From Macrostomum lignano (lineage: Eukaryota): a stretch of DNA of 37,345 bases. Position numbers and translations under genes: made by a program. The notes under the pieces were generated by a model. The model saw only the letters and a program-made list of their open reading frames with translations, was not told the origin of the DNA and made no database searches. Of the stretch, positions 3,481 through 28,950 are shown in pieces; positions within the stretch are counted from its first letter, which is position 1, and each line of letters opens with the position of its first letter. The DNA is taken from positions 1 through 37,345 of the forward strand of contig NIVC01000777.1 of the NCBI GenBank assembly GCA_002269645.1, read 5' to 3'.

Positions 3481-4394
3481 GACTCGAGCCTGGACCCGCA
3501 GTCGCCTGGTGGAGAGAACCGCCCTGTGGGCCAGCACTCCCCCATCCGTGACCAGGACCGCTTCCTGCCCATCGCCAACATATCGAAGATCATGAAGCGG
3601 ACCATCCCGGAGACTGGCAAGATCACCAAGGAGGCCAAAGAGTGCGTGCAGGAGTGCGTCTCCGAGTTCATCTCCTTCATCACCTCGGAGGCCTCCGACC
3701 GGTGCCAGGATGACAAGCGCAAGACTATGAACGGGGAGGACATCCTCACCGCTATGCAGGTGCGGCTGCGGATTTCACTGTGTTGGCTGTGCCGTCTTTT
3801 AAACGCTGCAGTCCATATCAGGGCTTTGGAATCTGGGAACTTGGAACACTCGACAGACGCGACCCTTCGTAGGTTCGGGCTTTGTTTCATAGAAGAGAGG
3901 CCTGACTAGCCAGCACCATCCGTCCCGTAGCAACAAAAGTTTCTGATTTCCGGTCTTCAGTTCAAACCAGCCACTTTCGATCTATTTAGGGATCGAGTCT
4001 GCATTGATTTCTTGAGCATCATCAGCTCAACCTGCTGCAACAATATTTGCTCAAAATTCTTTTATTACTACTAGTTAGCATTTAGCAAGCATAAATCGAT
4101 TTTATCCATGCACTTCAGGCCGTGGGCCTTGACAACTACATTGAGCCGCTGAAGCTCTACCTGCTGAAATACCGCGAGGCCAACAAGCTGGAGGCGGCTA
4201 ATGAGAGAGCTGGCAGCGCTGGCGCTTCCGCCTCGGCTTCCGGTGGCGTCAATCAGGACACGCCGTCCGCTGCCAGCTCTGCTGACGCCAGCGGTGCCGC
4301 TCCTCCGCCTTCCGTTGTTTCGGCGCCGACTGCCGTGACGCTGGCCGGCCTGGAGAATAGCAACGGCCAGGTGGTGTACCGGGTGATCATGTGA
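3481..4394 (+). CDS. NFYB: Nuclear transcription factor Y subunit B (histone-fold), 5'-incomplete; exons 3481-3759 and 4119-4394
   Basis: Translation contains [18 protein letters not shown]...[38 protein letters not shown]|[20 protein letters not shown], the NF-YB core. Phase-0 intron 3760-4118 (GTGCGG...TTCAG). The exon starts after the acceptor TTCAG at 3480 with no ATG before the conserved core. Confidence 0.95.
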
Positions 4395-4750
4395 GCCTGT
4401 TGCCAGGTGGTTGCCGGGTGATCATGAGACCCTGTTGCCAGGTGGTTGCCGGGTGATCATGAGACCCTGTTGCCAGGTGGTTGCCGGGTGATCATGAGAC
4501 CCTGTTGCCAGGTGGTTGCCGGGTGATCATGAGACCCTGTTGCCAGGTGGTTGCCGGGTGATCATGAGACCCTGTTGCCAGGTGGTTGCCGGGTGATCAT
4601 GAGACCCTGTTGCCAGGTGGTTGCCGGGTGATCATCAGACCCTGTTGCCAGGTGGTTGCCGGGTGATCATGAGACCCTGTTGCCAGGTGGTTGCCGTGAT
4701 CATGAGACCCTGCTGCCAGGTGGTTGCCGTGATCATGTGACCCTGTTGCC
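4367..4750 (+). repeat. 35-bp minisatellite, about 11 copies, overlapping the NF-YB stop codon
   Basis: Unit GAGACCCTGTTGCCAGGTGGTTGCCGGGTGATCAT. ATCAT recurs every 35 bp from 4386 to 4666, then at 33 bp. The first copy includes the last codons and the TGA. Confidence 0.95.
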
Positions 4751-7699: not shown

Positions 7700-8149
7700 T
7701 GAAGCATCAGGGTGTGGGGTGACGGTGTGCCTGAAGCATCAGGGTGTGGGGTGACGGTGTGCCTGAAGCATCAGGGTGTGGGGTGACAGTGTGCCTGAAG
7801 CATCAGGGTGTGGGGTGACAGTGTGCCTGAAGCATCAGGGTGTGGGGTGACAGTGTGCCTGAAGCATCAGGGTGTGGGGTGACAGTGTGCCTGAAGCATC
7901 AGGGTGTGTGGTGATAGTGTGCCTGAAGCATCAGGGTGTAGGATGACAGTGTGCCTGAAGCATCAGGGTGTGGGGTGACAGTGTGCCTGAAGCATCAGGG
8001 TGTAGGATGACAGTGTGCCTGAAGCATCAGGGTGTGGGGTGACAGTGTGCCTGAAGCATCAGGGTGTAGGATGACAGTGTGCCTGAAGCATCAGGGTGTG
8101 GGGTGACAGTGTGCCTGAAGCATCAGGGTGTAGGATGACAGTGTGCCTG
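7700..8149. repeat. 32-bp minisatellite, 14 copies
   Basis: Unit GTGTGCCTGAAGCATCAGGGTGTGGGGTGACA. CATCAG recurs every 32 bp from 7705 to 8121. Confidence 0.95.
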
Positions 8150-10929: not shown

Positions 10930-13900
10930 TCAGTCGTCCTCCTCCTCGTCCTCCTCCTCCTCGCCCGCGCCCTCCTCGGCGCCCTCCTCGGCCTCGGCCA
11001 GGGCCGCCTTCAGCGCCGCCTCCTCCTCGGGCGTCGGGTCCTCCGTCTCGGTGATCTCCGGCCCGCTGGGGAACTCCAGCAGCACTGGCGGCGGCGGCGG
11101 TGGGCTGTAGTTCTCGGTGGCGTACTTGTGGCCCCAGCCGATGTACACGTTCTCGAATAGACTGCGGGCATGGGCGGGACTGGGCTGCGACTTCTCCGGC
11201 TCACTTCTCAGCTCCTGTGCCTTTCCGGTTCCTTTCTCTTCTCTCCCTTTTCCCTGCCTCCCTTTCTTCTCTCTCTTATTTTCCCTTTCTGCGATCGCTT
11301 TTTATTTAGTCACAGAGGCTACTTGGTTCTGCTGCAAAAATAATGCCTCTCATGTTCCTAATTCTCCCCTCTCATGTTCCTAATTCTACCCTCTCCTGTT
11401 CCTAATTCTCCCCTCACCTGTCCCTAATTCTCCCCTCTCCTGTTCCTAATTCTCCCCTCTCATGTTCCTAATTCTCTCCTCTCCTGTTCCTAATTCTCCC
11501 CTTTCATGTCCCTAATTCACCACTCTCCTGTTCCTAATTCTCCCCTCTCATGTTCCTAATTCTCCCCTCTCATGTTCCTAATTCTCCCCTCTCCTGTTCC
11601 TAATTCTCCCTCTCCTGTTCCTAATTCTCCCCTCTCCTGTTCCTAATTCTCCCCTCTCCTGTTCCTAATTCTACCCTCTCCTGTTCCTAATTCTCCCCTC
11701 ACCTGTCCCTAATTCTCCCCTCTCCTGTTCCTAATTCTCCCCTCTCATGTTCCTAATTCTCCCCTCTCCTGTTCCTAATTCTCCCCTTTCATGTCCCTAA
11801 TTCACCACTCTCCTGTTCCTAATTCTCCCCTTTCATGTCCCTAATTCACCACTCTCCTGTTCCTAATTCTCCCCTCTCATGTTCCTAATTCTCCCCTCTC
11901 CTGTTCCTAATTCTCCCCTCTCCTGTTCCTAATTCTCCCCTCTCCTGTTCCTAATTCTCCCCTCTCCTGTTCCTAATTCTCCCCTCTCCTGTTCCTAATT
12001 CTCCCCTCTCCTGTCCCTAATTCTCCCCTCTCCTGTCCCTAATTCTCCCCTCTCCTGTCGCTAATTCGCCACTCTCCTGTCCCTAATTCTCCCCTCACCT
12101 GTCCCTAATTCTCCCCTCTCCTGTCCCTAATTCTTCCCTCTCCTGTCCCTAATTCTCCCCTCACCTGTCCCTAATTCTCCCCTCTCCTGTCCCTAATTCT
12201 TCCCTCTCCTGTCCCTAATTCGCCACTCTCCTGTTCCTAATTCTCCCCTCTCCTGTTCCTAATTCTCCCCTCTCCTGTTCCTAATTCTCCCCTCTCATGT
12301 GCCTAATTCTCCCCTCTCCTGTTCCTAATTCTCCCCTCTCCTGTTCCTAATTCTCCCCTCTCATGTCCCTAATTCTCCCCTCTCCTGTCCCTAGCCTCTC
12401 ATGTCCCTTATTCTCCCCTCTCATGTCCCTAATTCTCCCGTCTCATGTCCCTAATTCTCCCCTCTCCTGTCCCTCGCCTTTCATGTCCCTAATTCTCCCC
12501 TCTCCTGTCCCTAGCCTCTCATGTCCCTAATTCTCCCCTCTCATGTCCCTAATTCTCCCGTCTCATGTCCCTAATTCTCCCCTCTCATGTGCCTAATTCT
12601 CCCCTCTCCTGTTCCTAATTCTCCCCTCTCCTGTTCCTAATTCTCCCCTCTCATGTCCCTAATTCTCCCCTCTCCTGTCCCTAGCCTCTCATGTCCCTTA
12701 TTCTCCCCTCTCATGTCCCTAATTCTCCCGTCTCATGTCCCTAATTCTCCCCTCTCCTGTCCCTCGCCTTTCATGTCCCTAATTCTCCCCTCTCCTGTCC
12801 CTAGCCTCTCATGTCCCTAATTCTCCCCTCTCATGTCCCTAATTCTCCCGTCTCATGTCCCTAATTCTCCCCTCTCCTGTCCCTCGCCTTTCATGTCCCT
12901 AATTCTCCCCTCTCCTGTCCCTAGCCTCTCATGTCCCTAATTCTCCCCTCTCCTGTCTCTCGCCTCTCATGTCCCTCGCCTCTCATGCCCCTAATTCTCC
13001 CCTCTCATGTCCCTAATTCTCCCCTCTCCTGTCCCTCCCCTCTCATGTCCCTAATTCTCCCCTCTCATGTCCCTAATTCTCCCCTCTCATGTCCCTAATT
13101 CTCCCCTCTCCTGTCCCTCCCCTCTCATGTCCCTAATTCTCCCCTCTCATGTCCCTAATTCTCCCCTCTCATGTCCCTAATTCTCCCCTCTCCTGTTCCT
13201 AATTCTCCCCTTTCTCTCTTCTCCCCAGTCATCTCTCGCCGCGACTCGCACCTGCCTTGGGCCACCGCGTACGCGCCCGGCCACAGGTTGGAGGACAGGA
13301 CGGCAACCGAGAACTGCGGCAGCAGCTGCGACGAGAGCCGCGCCGTCCACGGCTGGTTGCCGTCAACCTCCGCGTCCTCGGACAGCGGCGTCAGCAGCGG
13401 TGGGCCCTCCTCCGGCTGCGGCTCGTCCATCTCCTCCTTCTCCTCTTCATCCTCGTCGTCAACGGAATCGTCGTCCCGCTTCTGCGCCGGATTCCACCAG
13501 CGGGTGCGGCCCTGCGGCAGGACGTGCTGCACATGGTGCACCCAGCTGGACAGGCTGGGGTCGATGAGCTCCCGCACCGGCATCGGCTCGAACTCCGGGT
13601 TCTCCACGAAGTTGTCGCGGCCGCCGCCCTCCTCATCCTCTTCCTCCTCTTCGTCGAACATGTAAAAGCCCTGCAGTTTCGGTGAGGGTAAGCATTTGGG
13701 AAGGGTAGTCCAGACCAGGTAAGCCTGATTACCTGAAGTAAACATTTCTGAGCTCCTAGCCCGCTGTCAGCTGGTCTTCTGAGCCAGGACCCGCCGGGAA
13801 ACAGTTAATGTTCTATTAAACTGCCCGGTGCCCAACAGTTTTTCTTACATCAGCTGGCTATAAGGGAATCGCTTAATTCTCTTTCCTCGCTACTCGTCAG

Positions 13901-17911: not shown

Positions 17912-19488
<1,577 letters not shown>

Positions 19489-19984
19489 CAGTTGCGAGCG
19501 CAGCTCTCTGTTTGCGAGAAAAATTTTCCCTAAAGCAGCTGTCCGCCCCGGATCGATTGAGATTCAAATTCGATGGGTTCCCATTGCGTGTTAGCTCGTT
19601 ATATGTGTTTGATTTAAGATGTTTTTGATGATTGTGATTGAAATTGAAATGCAGTTTTTGCGCTGATCTGTTGTTCATTCGCTTATCCAATCCAACGTCC
19701 CGTTGAAAACGTTACCGTTACGGAAATCGCTGGAGTCATTGCCAACACGCGAAAGATTTGTTCAATAGTCGGTTTGTTAGCGCTTAGCTTACTACTATCT
19801 TGAGTACACTAATAAGAGTTTTTATAAATGCGAAATGCAATTCTGACTCAAGCAAGCAACGCCTGAGATACGATTCTACGGCCCCGGAGTCATTCTAGAA
19901 GCGCCCCAGACTCACGCCTCAAATAGGCTCTTAGGCGACTCTTTTACGACTTTTTTGGCGTCCTTCACCGTGACTTCTCGTCCT

Positions 19985-20130
19985 TTTAGAGTCCTCTAGA
20001 GTCGCTTCTGTCCTATTTTACCTGTGTTGTTACCTGGGCGACGCAAGTGACTCTGGGACGCTTCCTGGCCTTGGGGTACCGTTTTTCATCGGAACGCTTG
20101 TCCGTTTATTTGTTGTGCCCGTCTTCCGCT
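19985..20130 (+). repeat. Dispersed repeat copy B, with an inverted partner at 19899-19915
   Basis: 23/24 match to 5717-5740. AAGCGCCCCAGACTCAC (19899-19915) is a 15/17 reverse complement of 20047-20063. Confidence 0.55.
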
Positions 20131-20701
20131 ATAAAGTGTTTCTGCTTGCTGCTTTCCTGTATTGGTGTGTGGGAGTTCCCGCTGATTTGCAATGTTATAT
20201 TCACCTCCCTTGCTATTATGGTCAATCTGGTCAGTGTTAATCCGTTTGCTATTTATCAGCTAATAATACATCATATTACACGCGCCGTCGCATTATATAT
20301 TATTTTACCTAGCTGAGTATAACTCTGTCCCGCCCTGTCCGACATTCCCCATGCATTGGAATCCACAGTCAGTGCTTAGCGACCTGCTTGACTGGTTCAC
20401 TTTCTTTCAATTAGTTTCTGTTGCGCTTGCTCGCTGAAAAGATAAAAAAATAGTAAAACAGTGACGAATTTCTTTTGCTTCGGGATGATTTGGTTTTTTT
20501 GTTTCCTTACTTTTTTATAATGCATAAATGCCATAAATATCAAAGCGGTGCAGGGGTTTTGTGGTGTACAATATGTGTCCGAACACTGATTGCACACTGA
20601 TTGTTGAAGTAGAGCTTCGAGCGTGTGCGTGTCACAGGTGACGACACAGGTAGAATCTCGCAAAAAGAATTTTAAAATTATCATCAATTTCCCATCTGCA
20701 G

Positions 20702-23592
20702 TCGCGCATCGAGTTCCCGCCAGTGGAAGAAATCCAACGGCAATGCCACGAGCTGGAGGCTCTGCTGGACGGCGAAGACGACGGCGACGAGTCCGGATCT
20801 GCGAAGCGGCGCGACCGGCCCTGCCCGCTGTGCGGCCGGCAGTTCCGCCTCTTGGCCAACCTGCGCCGGCACCTCCGCCTGCGGCACGCGCTGCTGCACC
20901 GGCAGGAGTCTCCCGAGCAGCCGCCCAGGAAGCGGAGCCGCCCGACCGGCCCAGCAAAGAAGCCGGGATGGGCCGGCGCCAGCGGCGAGTGGCGCAGCGC
21001 CGAGGTGGCCAGCCACGCCGAGCTGACAGCCTGGCGCCTCAGCCACGAGGCCAGCGTCGGCTGCCGGTACTATGTCAGCAGCCTGCGGCGGGAGGGCGGC
21101 GGCGGCGAGCCCGGGGCGGTTCGCTACTGCGTGCACAGCTGCAGCGCTGGCTGGCGGACCCGCCTGGCCTGCCCGGCCCGCATCATCGCCTCCAGGCGGC
21201 CGGGCGGCCTGGCCGGCTACCGGATTCGCTACTCCCTGCTGCACCGCCACCACCCAGAGCACCGGCCGCCCGCCCGCACCCGCTTCAGCGCTGGCGAAGC
21301 CAGTCACGTGCCAGACGTGCGCGCCCGCGCGCTGCGCTCGGCGCTGCTGTCTACTGAGGAGCCCGACCGGCTGTGCGACCCCCGGCTGGCCCGGCGCCTG
21401 ACGCGCGAGGCCCTACGCGGCCATGCCCTGGGCGGCCAGCAGCCGTGGCAGGCGGTCGAGGATCGGCTGCTGGCCGAACTGGCGGCCGGGCCGGCCAGCC
21501 CGCTGCTGCTGTGCCAGTTCCGGCGCTCCTGGTGCTTCAGAAACCGCGTCCGGCTTGGCGCCGGCTTTCGCCCGTCTGACGGCGCGCTCGGCTGCGCGCT
21601 GACGCTGCAGGCGCCGTCAGAGCGGCAGCTGCTGGCGCAGCGTCTTTCCAGCGCCGAAGCTCTGGTCATCGACTGCGTCTACGAGAGCTCCGACCCCGAG
21701 GAGATCAGCGTGCTCTGCCTGCTGCTGCTGGATGCTGAGGGTGAGGCAGTCGGCAACTGTATGCAGTTTTGAATGAGAAAAATAGCCCTATCGACTTTAT
21801 TGATTGCTGCTTGGCATTTCAGGGCGGCCACAGACAGGCGGCTGGCTGCTGACTGACCGAGTCACCGAGACTCGCGTTGAGGACTGGCTGCGCTGCTGCG
21901 TCACCGCGGCGGCCGATTCGCCTCGCTCCGACTCCGGCTGCGCCTTCACCGGCTGGCTGCTGCTGCCGCCCGGACTGCTGGGCGCCACTGCCGGGGCCCG
22001 CGTGTTCCCCAGGGCTGCCGGCTGTTTTGCCGAGCGGCTGCAGCTGCTGAGGAGCTGGCGGCGCTGCCTGCAGGTGAGCGTCTGCCATCTGATTGTCTCT
22101 TCAGTCCACTCCCCTGTTTTTAGACCTCTCCATTGTGTCAGTCGTCCCAATTGTGTCCTCAGTCCACCGCATTGTGTCCTCAGTCCACCGCATTGCGTCT
22201 TCAGTCCACCTCATTGCGTCCTCAGTCCACCGCATTGCGTCCTCAGTTCTCCCTATTTTCCTCAGTTCTCCCTATTGTGTCCTCAGTTCTCCCTATTTTC
22301 CTCAGTTCTCCCTATTTTCCTCAGTTCTCCCTATTTTCCTCAGTTCTCCCTATTTTCCTCAGTTCTCCCTATTTTCCTCAGTTCTCCCTATTTTCCTCAG
22401 TTCTCCCTATTTTCCTCAGTTCTCCCTATTTTCCTCAGTTCTCCCTATTTTCCTCAGTCCACTCCACTGTCACTCAACCGCAGGCCCGCCCGGACCAGTG
22501 GGACGTGGCCGCCCTGCTGCTGCTGGAGCTCCACGCCGCGGCAGTGCAGCCGCAGCTCGGCCGGGCCTCCGCCGCCCTGTCAGAATTCGCCAGAAAATTC
22601 CGCCGCGTCTCGCCGGAGCTGGCGGCTCGCGCCGACCGCCTTGCCCGCTGGCCGCAGCTGTGGGCGGACGCGGCCAAGCCGGCCCGCCTTCGCTGGGTGG
22701 AGATGCGGCTGCACTCGAACCCGGGACTGCTCGGTCTGCTACCCCTGCACTTCGCCGGACGGACGCGCCGGCCCGACCGCCTGCTGGCGCTGGTGCTGGA
22801 GGCGGCTGACTGGCGCCGCAGCTGCTGCGAGCTGGACGACGACCTCGATAGCCACCGGGAGTCCCTGGCCGGCGACACCGCCACCGCCCCGGTGACGGCG
22901 GCTTTTCGGACAGACGCGCCGGCCATTCACAGCGGGCCCGCCTGGCCGGATTTGGCCGATCAGTTCTGTCCGAGGGAGATCCAGGTGAGCGGGTGTCCAT
23001 GAATATGCGGGTGTCCATGAATATGCATTCTGAATTCAGCTCGCAATGCTGTACATGCACTGCTGTCGCACTCTTGCAGGCGCAGCTGGCCGGGCAGCCC
23101 TGCCTCGTGGCCGGCAGCCAGCTGGTCCGCCGGGTTCGCTCCGTCTGTCCGGAGCGGCTCTGCTTCCGACTCTGCCCGTCCGCCGCCTGTGCCGGCCTGT
23201 GCCCGCACCTGTACCGCTGCGACTGCCGGCCGGCGGGCCAGACCGGCTTCTGCCGCCACGTGCACCGGGCGCACGCCGATCTGACAGCCCGCCTGCTGCA
23301 CACGCCGGCTGCCGAGGCGGTGCGCAGAGCCACTGTGGCCGAACAGCCACTGCTGCTGCCGGCCAGGCCGTCCGACCAGCTGCTGGTTGAAGCGGAGCTC
23401 GGCCTGTCAGCGGAGCCGCATCAGCAGCCGCATCAGCTCGCCGCGGCTGCCAGTTCCGCGACAGTCCCGACGCATTCGGCAGAGCTGCAAGTCTGGCTGC
23501 CGGACGCACCGCTGCCGCCGCAACCGCTGATATCCTCGGACCTCAGCCCACGGGCTCAGCAGCTGATTAGCCTGCTGCTGGACGATGATTGA
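20702..23592 (+). CDS. C2H2 zinc finger + MULE transposase-derived + SWIM domain protein (about 767 aa, no in-window ATG); exons 20702-21740, 21823-22073, 22484-22984, 23080-23592
   Basis: CPLCGRQFRLLANLRRHLRLRH (C2H2). CVHSC...CPARI...YSLLHRHH (WRKY/GCM1-like). LVIDCVYE...LLLLDAEG|RPQTGGWLL (MULE RNase H-like core). RPDRLLALV. CPHLYRCDC-x8-CRHVH (SWIM). Three GT-AG introns preserve frame. Confidence 0.75.
22150..22460 (+). repeat. Adjacent 21-bp and 19-bp minisatellites in intron 2 of the MULE-derived gene
   Basis: CCTCAGTCCACCGCATTGTGT (about 4 copies) grades into CTCAGTTCTCCCTATTTTC (about 11 copies; CTCAG every 19 bp from 22282 to 22453). Confidence 0.9.
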
Positions 23593-24763
23593 CAGGCATT
23601 TATTTGCGGCTGCTGTCCGAATACCTTAATTACACTTGTGCATTTGCTGCTGCTGTTTATTGTTTATATTCGATCTTGTTCGGCATTCTGAATGCAACTT
23701 GAACTTCTCAAATAATTCAAATAAAGTAAAAAAATCGAAGACCGGGCAGAATCCAATTGGCTTTACCGATCAGATAGAGAGGAGACCTGAAATTCTGGGG
23801 CTGCCTATCAGCAATGGCGGCGTGTCAAAACATGATTTATTATTTAACAATGCCTGATGAGATCGATCAATGGTTAGCGGCACAACAGCGGGGACAGCAA
23901 CTGGAGTCGCTGGGCGGGCAAGTATAAAACACACACACACACTTAACGCATCTCTCAAAAAGGAGAATTTTCAGTCATATTGTTGGAATAAACAAACAAA
24001 CATACAAAACCGGCAGCGCCTAAACAATTGTAAAACGAACCGAAGCTAAGAAAGTAAAAAACGGGAATCACGCAATGCGGATTAATAATGAGGCTTTGTA
24101 CAGGGACTATGACAGAATTGAGCCTGGGAATTCTTTCCTAATAGAAAAGATTATAAATATGCTACGAAAATTGAACTATTGAATCGGTGCCAAGTTGTGA
24201 AAGCAATTTTAACAAAAAGTATTACAACGCCCACAGTGGAATTGAGTTGCAGAAACTGAAGCAGCGGCAACAACAGAGACAAAGGTATAACAGAAGCCAG
24301 GCAGGAAAGCGAGATTAGGCGGGGCGGACAGGAGGATTAAGCCATGACTTGCTGGGGCTGCCGTACTACTGAGGAAAAACAACTGGTCAAATTTTAGCAC
24401 CAGGACGTTGCCTGCCGATAATTAATTTAAAAAAAGCTATTTTATTGTTAGTTTTTACCTGAACGCGCAGTATAGCAGAAAAACTACATGTACAGCAGCG
24501 AGTGTACACAGCGGTTATTTCCATACAGTAACCAAACATACTACTAGTCTGTTAGTAGCGCAAGTTCTAGGATAAGATAAAACTGTTGTCTTGGTTTAGT
24601 GATATGCAACGACGTAAATATTTCTGTCATTTTAGCTAAGCTTGCAGACCTGGGGACTGACTGACAGCTGAACCCTGACCGGCGCACCAATTTCATGATA
24701 CGAAGAAATAAAAATCAAAAGTTAATCCGGCTCCAGTCCCAATTGCCATGGCAACCGGGTCAG

Positions 24764-28768
<4,005 letters not shown>

Positions 28769-28950
28769 CTAAACAGAAAGGTGGTGAGAATGGGTGAGAT
28801 TAAAAGAACCCAGTGGCTCCTGCGGATCTATTAAAAGTCCAAAGTACAAAACAGTCTAAAAGAAAAAATTTCGTAGACTAGACTAAATTTTGCTTTAGGA
28901 GTCATCTCATTGTCACAATCGGATTAGTAATAAAGAGATAAAGCCACTAA

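Follow-up and report, generated by a model that had tools for sequence, protein, structure and literature searches.

What is the gene at positions 20702-23592 on the plus strand of a 37,345-bp stretch of DNA from the flatworm Macrostomum lignano, and what has become of the mobile element it resembles? The stretch, which we call the window, is one entire contig (NIVC01000777.1) of assembly GCA_002269645.1. New DNA-binding regulators have arisen repeatedly from domesticated transposases; examples derived from Mutator-like elements (MULEs) are well studied in plants (FHY3/FAR1, MUSTANG) and poorly documented in animals. A sequence-only reading of the window had proposed that this gene is such a case, a MULE transposase with a degenerate catalytic triad, turned into a lineage-specific DNA-binding regulator. 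Our analysis supports the greater part of that proposal: we consider it likely that this is a domesticated, immobile and catalytically dead Mutator-like transposase gene, whose product would serve a DNA-binding regulatory role.

An intact four-exon gene

The intact frame of four exons and about 767 codons that had been read from the sequence was borne out. The exons sum to 2304 nt, or 767 codons plus a TGA stop, all internal junctions are AG/GT, and the product matches, residue for residue, NCBI PAA76948.1, "hypothetical protein BOX15_Mlig023565g1, partial". The parts of the gene are as follows.

20702-21740, plus strand: exon 1, 346 codons and 1 nt, without an ATG; initiator presumed to come from a spliced leader
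21741-21822, plus strand: intron 1, inside the first half of the RNase H-like (MULE) core
21823-22073, plus strand: exon 2, AG/GT junctions, frame continuous
22484-22984, plus strand: exon 3, AG/GT junctions, frame continuous
23080-23592, plus strand: exon 4, with the stop codon TGA at 23590-23592
23720-23725, plus strand: AATAAA poly(A) signal, 128 nt past the stop codon

The DNA of the locus is very GC-rich, and several other frames are open too (200-360 codons, the longest 363 aa). The 767-codon frame is periodic in composition, with a GC fraction of 0.76 at first (GC1), 0.57 at second (GC2) and 0.86 at third (GC3) codon positions, and we take it to be the coding one because its GC3 of 0.86 stands against 0.43-0.50 in the introns and 0.41-0.43 in the flanks. 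The encoded protein is of unusual composition: Leu, Ala, Arg and Pro together make up 49% of residues, while Lys accounts for 0.8% and Asn for 0.4%. An Rfam scan of the window gave no match, and a literature search for the gene's identifiers found none.

Zinc modules in the order of a MULE transposase

The C2H2 finger, basic patch, WRKY/GCM1-like block and SWIM-type signature that the sequence-only reading had listed are all present as described. Together with the core and the tail they are arranged along the gene in this order.

20822-20887, plus strand: single C2H2 zinc finger CPLCGRQFRLLANLRRHLRLRH, with the canonical pattern CX2CX12HX4H
20921-20968, plus strand: basic patch PPRKRSRPTGPAKKPG, read from the sequence as a candidate nuclear localisation signal
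21020-21253, plus strand: WRKY/GCM1- or FAR1-like block, W...C...CPARI...HRH; the W and the C, C, H, H are kept, and a 24-residue loop is deleted relative to the relatives
21593-22073, plus strand: putative RNase H-like (MULE) core, first half, placed by hhalign in register with the MULE domain of the relatives
23125-23274, plus strand: C-terminal zinc module with 12 invariant Cys/His, including the SWIM signature CDCx8CRH (23218-23259), found by exhaustive phmmer and BLASTP
23542-23589, plus strand: C-terminal motif LSPRAQQLISLLLDDD, which aligns with LQSRLQHLVNLL of the relatives; these run on for about 35 residues beyond the end of this protein

The match of the finger to Pfam zf-C2H2 (E 0.0015, 19.3 bits) falls under the cut-off of 25.2; the finger aligns with the last N-terminal C2H2 finger of the relatives, with which it has 'NL+xH' in common. 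In addition to the basic patch, the protein has acidic ends. The N-terminal block, at residues 34-181, matched the Penaeus protein P0016 by BLASTP (E 0.001). Pfam FAR1 (PF03101) has no match in the M. lignano protein and matches two of 11 relatives weakly (E 0.004), and the ligands and the CPARI motif align.

For the C-terminal module, BLASTP against the relatives gave E-values of 6e-14 to 5e-11 at 32-47% identity, and one database source names the C-terminal fragment 'SWIM-type domain-containing protein'. Pfam SWIM (PF04434) matches neither this protein nor any of the 11 relatives, though the CxCxnCxH signature is present. The 12-Cys/His module, missed by PF04434 in 11 of 11 family members, might merit a dedicated profile. 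By alignment, all of the zinc ligands are kept, 12 in the C-terminal module and eight in the N-terminal ones.

Probable descent from a Mutator-like transposase

A PDB sequence search with the protein returned C2H2 fingers only, and word-indexed homolog searches, with the whole protein or with an alignment that includes it (A1), returned only the M. lignano copies, in the second case probably because the candidate list was crowded with low-complexity words; a word-indexed search with a trimmed family alignment found seven proteins, too few for a deep profile. Exhaustive phmmer against 1.84 billion representative sequences gave two classes of local match, C2H2 arrays and 20-odd proteins that match over residues 607-690 (E 6e-10 to 1e-3). 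Ten of the latter were scanned with Pfam. Five carry MULE upstream of the matching domain; four of these five also have ZSWIM1-3_RNaseH-like, and three have N-terminal C2H2 fingers.

Aligned with MAFFT, the M. lignano protein and the relatives are collinear end to end. The conserved blocks run, in order, through the C2H2 finger; the W...C...CPARI...HxH of WRKY/GCM1-FAR1 kind; L..L...P.NP; the strand of the first Asp; the next strand, with ..D..G; the region of the second Asp and CxxH, with its conserved RSW; two conserved Trp; the HSN region; the 12-Cys/His module; and the tail motif LQ..L..LL. In the family of 11 relatives, PF10551 (MULE) is found in nine and PF21056 in eight, with E-values down to 1e-11. 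Comparison of the whole protein with this family by hhalign joined residues 254-667 to residues 278-666 of P0023 in one alignment (probability 97.9%, E 3.8e-13), much of the score being due to the C-terminal module. The core alone scored 24.6, which none of 300 composition-preserving shuffles reached (mean 15.2, sd 2.5, maximum 22.8). The similarity signal is weak because this protein is rich in Ala, Arg, Leu and Pro while the relatives are rich in Lys, Asn and Ile. The MULE-like core that had been proposed finds no direct Pfam match; the link to MULE proteins comes through the family alignment, at E 3.8e-13 over residues 254-667 and with the same domain order. We read these alignments as indicating that the protein descends from a MULE transposase and has kept its zinc-finger modules.

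Predicted structure is consistent with this. In an AlphaFold2 model built with the family alignment, residues 318-405 follow the order strand, strand, strand, helix, strand, helix, which is that of RNase H. This model is not independent evidence, because information from the MULE relatives is built into it.

A degenerate catalytic site

The alignment with the relatives also locates the positions at which an active enzyme of this kind has its DDE residues and CxxH motif.

21671-21673, plus strand: first catalytic Asp, kept, in VIDCV; aligns with the D of VDTTH or GDATH in the relatives
21966-21968, plus strand: position of the second Asp, here Pro, in LLLPPG; the relatives have MTDED or SDDD
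22026-22043, plus strand: position of CxxH, here FAERLQ, with C replaced by Glu and H by Gln; the relatives have CHWH or SKWH, and the RSW that follows is conserved
22697-22720, plus strand: region of the catalytic Glu, VEMRLHSN, with Met in the Glu column; LLESLHN in P0021; the local-pair alignment is less clear here

The complete triad with CxxH is therefore absent, and the claim that only the first Asp is recognisable holds up, with the Met in the Glu column depending on the alignment. The Glu is the least certain of these losses, because the M. lignano protein has a Glu one residue upstream of the column. With replacements at two or three positions of the DDE triad and in the CxxH, the protein is, as far as its residues predict, unable to cut or join DNA.

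Four copies at one locus

The 90% cluster of the protein holds four sequences, all from M. lignano and each on a contig with a conserved neighbourhood. The gene order is the same in all four: a radial-spoke gene, RSP (minus strand), UBA5/ThiF (plus), the gene itself (plus) and DOT1/DOT1L (minus). Mapped onto the window, the UBA5 exons occupy 17912-19490 and the DOT1 motifs lie at about 27100-28770 on the minus strand. Because all four copies sit between UBA5 and DOT1L, they are homeologs or duplicate contigs and not transpositions. The sequence-only reading had held that many dispersed, near-identical copies with terminal inverted repeats (TIRs) would tell against domestication. What we found is four known sequences, all in the RSP/UBA5/gene/DOT1L context, that is, at one locus and with the same neighbours throughout; the dispersed copies of an active element were not found, and the position is fixed within the species. 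Nor were TIRs seen, as that reading had noted: no inverted-repeat pair brackets the gene in 19400-24600, and none of the four copies has TIRs.

Two of the copies, L001 and L002, differ from the window by 1-3%. Their upstream spacers differ from it by 2.6-3.0% and their flanks contain 2-5 gap blocks, while their exons differ by 0.2-1.25% and have no frame-breaking indel. The only indel in the exons of L002 is an in-frame one of 3 bp at the very 3' end of exon 4, exons 1-3 being indel-free. The third, L003 (contig NIVC01001698.1), shows 0-1 mismatches to the window and a few single-base indels, and because of this near-identity it is, by its sequence, a duplicate contig or an allele of the window. 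NCBI annotates only a 264-aa C-terminal product on L003, as the frame is broken in exon 1. Hidden polyploidy is reported for M. lignano in PMC10468722, and the pattern of copies fits hidden polyploidy rather than transposition.

Purifying selection on the coding sequence

Pairwise dN/dS (the ratio of non-synonymous to synonymous change) among the copies is 0.13-0.24, whereas a neutral value had been named as evidence against a host gene. The three distinct copies differ by 19 synonymous and 10 non-synonymous changes. This excess of synonymous change is significant in a binomial test, with p 2e-5 for a neutral synonymous fraction of 0.274 and p 8e-4 under a conservative null of 0.35. None of the 10 replacements falls at a Cys or His ligand. 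The coding sequence is thus under purifying selection, as measured in a small sample of recent divergence.

A start codon probably supplied by the spliced leader

The sequence-only reading overlooked that no ATG occurs within the first 500 codons of the 767-codon frame. The sole Met is the one in VEMRLHSN, and NCBI annotates the products of the gene as 5'-partial. One further feature lies directly 5' of exon 1.

20696-20701, plus strand: splice acceptor CTGCAG, the proposed spliced-leader trans-splice site

The spliced leader of M. lignano, CGGTCTCTTACTGCGAAGACTCAATTTATTGCATG, ends in ...TTGCATG, and the acceptor motif enriched at its trans-splice sites is [T/C]TNCAG (PMC8629364). CTGCAG fits this motif, and its context is identical in all four genomic copies; the annotation of L002 begins the gene with the base immediately 3' of the acceptor. 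Joined to exon 1, the leader reads ATG TCG CGC ATC GAG, in frame. Use of the 3'-terminal AUG of a flatworm leader as initiator is established for Schistosoma, according to the citation of Cheng et al. 2006 in PMC9851317. Because the frame lacks an ATG, the acceptor fits the motif and the leader's ATG is in frame, we propose that the mRNA is probably trans-spliced, with its junction at 20701/20702 and the terminal AUG of the leader as start codon. We also considered an upstream cis exon with an in-frame ATG and rejected it; a check by hand showed that a reading from the ATG at 20573 is out of phase at both of the donors close by.

The gene may be co-transcribed with UBA5, which lies upstream. 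From the UBA5 stop codon to the acceptor is 1211 nt (a figure not adjusted for repeats), and these 1211 nt contain neither AATAAA nor ATTAAA. The spacer without a poly(A) signal, together with a database gene model, P0002, that joins UBA5 to this gene in frame, suggests read-through or polycistronic transcription with UBA5.

Weighing the alternatives

A number of our results count against a domesticated transposase and need to be set beside those above. Pfam found no MULE, SWIM, FAR1 or ZSWIM match in the protein even at E<=10. Among 1.84 billion representatives there was no full-length relative but the protein itself, and no ortholog outside M. lignano. With the zinc-finger ends removed, the core alone is marginal (hhalign E 0.03-0.08), always in the correct register; the reversed sequence, used as a control, scored 21.9 against the observed 24.6, global BLOSUM62 alignment of the core with four relatives gave no signal above shuffles, and hmmsearch with a five-sequence core profile gave 2.4 bits and rank three among 2001 sequences. 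The AlphaFold2 model, built on a six-row family alignment, is of low confidence (predicted local distance difference test, pLDDT, 42). Its five best Foldseek matches in PDB were all to ISCth4 (6XG8/6XGX/6XGW), an IS256-family transposase, at non-significant E-values of 0.013-0.5 and a TM-score of 0.12-0.21, and they depend on the family alignment; at this TM-score and pLDDT the likeness is suggestive only. IS256 is the prokaryotic counterpart of Mutator. A single-sequence model of residues 285-670 reached a pLDDT of 38 and yielded Foldseek noise, with ISCth4 at ranks 9, 10 and 26, and a PDB search with the family profile found nothing relevant. The structural comparison that had been suggested as a check therefore came out divided: ISCth4 tops the list for the alignment-based model, at E-values short of significance, and it is lost in noise when the alignment is withheld. 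The predicted structure is consistent with a transposase origin and does not decide it. Lastly, the homeologs are recent and supplied the selection test with only 29 substitutions, and exon 1 of L003 (L003 5754-6791) contains frameshifting indels, in three single-base indel blocks with one base mismatch.

If the first group of these results is given most weight, the gene might not derive from a transposase at all: it could be a zinc-finger protein of the ordinary sort, having nothing in common with MULE proteins but C2H2 fingers and a Cys/His-rich module at its C-terminus. The strong similarity is indeed limited to residues 607-690 and the C2H2 finger, the Pfam MULE search is negative, and the core alone reaches only E 0.03-0.08. 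We think this very unlikely, as four separately found blocks (C2H2 with the WRKY-like block; the region of the first Asp; the RSW/Trp region; the C-terminal module with its tail) have the order and spacing of the MULE family, the core scores above all 300 shuffles in the correct register, and the predicted secondary structure is in RNase H order. Another reading is that of a MULE relic without host function, fixed before the genome duplication and decaying since, whose frame is open merely because stops are rare in GC-rich DNA and the copies are young. The lost catalytic residues, the lack of a detected ortholog elsewhere in the homolog searches and exhaustive phmmer, the other open frames of up to 363 aa, the frameshifted L003 copy and the extreme composition (49% Leu, Ala, Arg and Pro) would all suit a relic. 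Against it stand the synonymous excess (p 2e-5), exons free of frame-breaking indels in three copies when each copy's flanks have 2-5 gap blocks, the retention of all 12 C-terminal and all eight N-terminal zinc ligands, the strong codon periodicity (GC3 0.86 against GC2 0.57), and the three canonical introns with a poly(A) signal. The differences between L003 and the window are indels, as is expected of long-read consensus errors, and the apparent frameshifts in its exon 1 are probably such errors and not the mark of a pseudogene. On balance we hold a relic to be unlikely.

That the protein is a still-active transposase with unconventional catalytic residues is hardly credible. It has kept the first Asp, and a Glu adjoins the Glu column, but the second Asp and the CxxH are gone, there are no TIRs, and the copies are confined to one conserved locus. 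A last alternative concerns the extent of the gene and not its descent, and would make it an alternative 3' part of UBA5: cis-splicing from the donor GT at 19432 to the acceptor at 20701 would yield a UBA5-transposase fusion through exon capture, as happened in SETMAR. The UniProt/MetaClust model P0002 (A0A1I8GZ54, 871 aa) makes exactly this in-frame join, 19431/19432 to 20701/20702, with the donor inside the last UBA5 exon; the two genes are adjacent and on the same strand in all copies, and no AATAAA or ATTAAA separates the UBA5 stop from the acceptor. P0002 was, however, predicted on an older assembly. Its donor, GTGCAG, is weak relative to the species' GT[G/A]AG motif, the acceptor fits the trans-splice motif, and the NCBI annotation of the newer assembly separates UBA5 (414 aa) from the gene, which it starts at the acceptor. 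A fusion is therefore improbable in our estimate, and we favor a separate, domesticated MULE gene with a leader-supplied start.

Animal relatives and known systems

The relatives with names are each an "uncharacterized protein", of the shrimps Penaeus chinensis (XP_047498736) and P. indicus (XP_063608197) and of the brittle star Amphiura filiformis (P0046); the others are ENA, Logan and JGI proteins (P0010, P0019, P0021, P0023, P0024 and P0047-P0049). They carry the C2H2, FAR1-like, MULE and Cys/His modules in the same order as the M. lignano protein, end to end. They differ from it in being K/N/I-rich and matching Pfam MULE directly, whereas the M. lignano protein is A/R/L/P-rich with no direct match, has lost more catalytic positions, and is without the 24-residue basic loop and the last ~35 residues.

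The full set of D, D, CxWH and E is found in one relative only, P0021. The triad positions read D, D, N in the Amphiura group and D, D, D in P0024 and P0049, and neither Penaeus species has the first Asp. In Penaeus the gene consists of one intronless open reading frame; that of Amphiura is a 9.3-kb multi-exon gene. Because of the decayed triads, the single intronless frame in Penaeus and the 9.3-kb gene in Amphiura, the family seems to include several host genes as well as elements that may be active. In L005 and L006, searches for TIRs around the relatives returned only microsatellites or unrelated pairs, and a search for conserved neighbours of the Amphiura and Penaeus genes met no called genes within 8-10 kb. 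Among these and related proteins, P0010 (1762 aa) contains two tandem units of the C2H2/FAR1-like/MULE-core/Cys-His architecture, and in P0014 this C-terminal Cys/His module occurs together with a Ulp1 (C48) protease domain and a PHD finger, recalling the protease-carrying MULEs of plants.

With the same architecture in a brittle star and in shrimps, several of them with decayed triads, the description of the regulator as lineage-specific was not established. One could go further and suppose that the Macrostomum gene and the single-copy, triad-degenerate genes of Amphiura and Penaeus stem from one ancient domestication and form an undescribed, bilaterian-wide family of regulators with a dead MULE core. 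Its members would combine C2H2, a WRKY-like block, that dead core and a 12-Cys/His module unseen by Pfam SWIM, and the Macrostomum member would have been driven to a GC-rich extreme and become dependent on the leader AUG for translation. Taken as a whole, we regard this as doubtful.

In the plant factors FHY3/FAR1/FRS and MUSTANG (PMC13306707, PMC6446971), a DNA-binding zinc domain of the WRKY/GCM1 class at the N-terminus precedes an inactive MULE-derived core and a C-terminal SWIM finger. Like them, the M. lignano gene is immobile and under selection. Unlike them, it would represent an independent animal event, with an extra C2H2 finger and an extended C-terminal module of 12 ligands; there is no detectable direct sequence similarity, Pfam FAR1 and SWIM are negative, and its DNA binding is a prediction. 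In vertebrates, ZSWIM1 and ZSWIM3 (PF21056) are MULE-derived genes with a SWIM finger, and PF21056 matches the relatives of the M. lignano protein but not the protein itself. 'FHY3-like' transposon-derived factors have been reported across metazoans, in an account that does not mention flatworms (PMC10027918). Active animal MULEs of the clades Phantom, Curupira, Ghost, Spectre and Muta1 include some with C2H2 or SWIM fingers and some without TIRs (PMC6446971). They have an intact DDE triad, multiple copies and mostly TIRs and target-site duplications, in contrast to the degenerate triad, lack of TIRs and single locus described here.

Repeat arrays in the window

Intron 2 of the gene contains minisatellites, and its length varies between copies (410 nt in the window, 216 nt in L001 and 145 nt in L002).

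22132-22458, plus strand: minisatellites in intron 2, with 21/42-bp and 19-bp units

More generally, minisatellite copy number in introns 2 and 3 differs between the homeologous copies (window 22132-22458 and 22989-23026; L001 12128-12650). The 18-bp unit GCGGGTGTCCATGAATAT is present in 2.1 copies in the window and in a run of ~500 bp in L001 (~28 copies by our own count). Further long minisatellite arrays lie at 11346-13211, 4366-4750, 7700-8149, 25140-25792 and 26654-26923 of the window, the last two inside the span of the minus-strand DOT1L gene. The largest, built from a 22/44-bp unit (~87 copies, counted as 22 bp), is strongly C/T-rich on the plus strand, and it accounts for the extreme GC and AT skew at 9-13 kb. 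Between the mapped UBA5 coding blocks 17912-18313 and 18724-19392, a (CTGT)n microsatellite of ~74 copies occupies 18358-18648.

Implications

The ancestral transposase would have had one or more C2H2 fingers, a WRKY/GCM1- or FAR1-like module, an RNase H-like core with a helical insertion and a SWIM-containing Cys/His module. In the present protein DNA binding would fall to the N-terminal C2H2 and WRKY-like modules, and the dead core would act jointly with the SWIM module as a scaffold for multimerisation or interaction, as in plant FHY3/FAR1. The outcome would be a sequence-specific DNA-binding factor acting as a transcriptional or chromatin regulator, and by analogy with the plant proteins such a DNA-binding regulatory role is most likely.

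The domestication of MULEs is already known, well in plants and by report in animals (ZSWIM1/3; the factors of PMC10027918), and we found none described for flatworms. Since the gene encodes a single hypothetical protein, we judge its importance to be moderate. What adds interest is its dependence on a leader AUG, the GC-driven divergence that hides its domain from Pfam, and an uncharacterised animal family of like architecture. M. lignano is a regeneration model amenable to transgenesis and RNAi, and the locus offers in it a testable example of a catalytic knockout by evolution, with zinc modules intact and a start codon apparently supplied by the leader. Beyond this, the locus draws attention to uncharacterised animal proteins of the same architecture, whose conserved 12-Cys/His module escapes current Pfam SWIM models.

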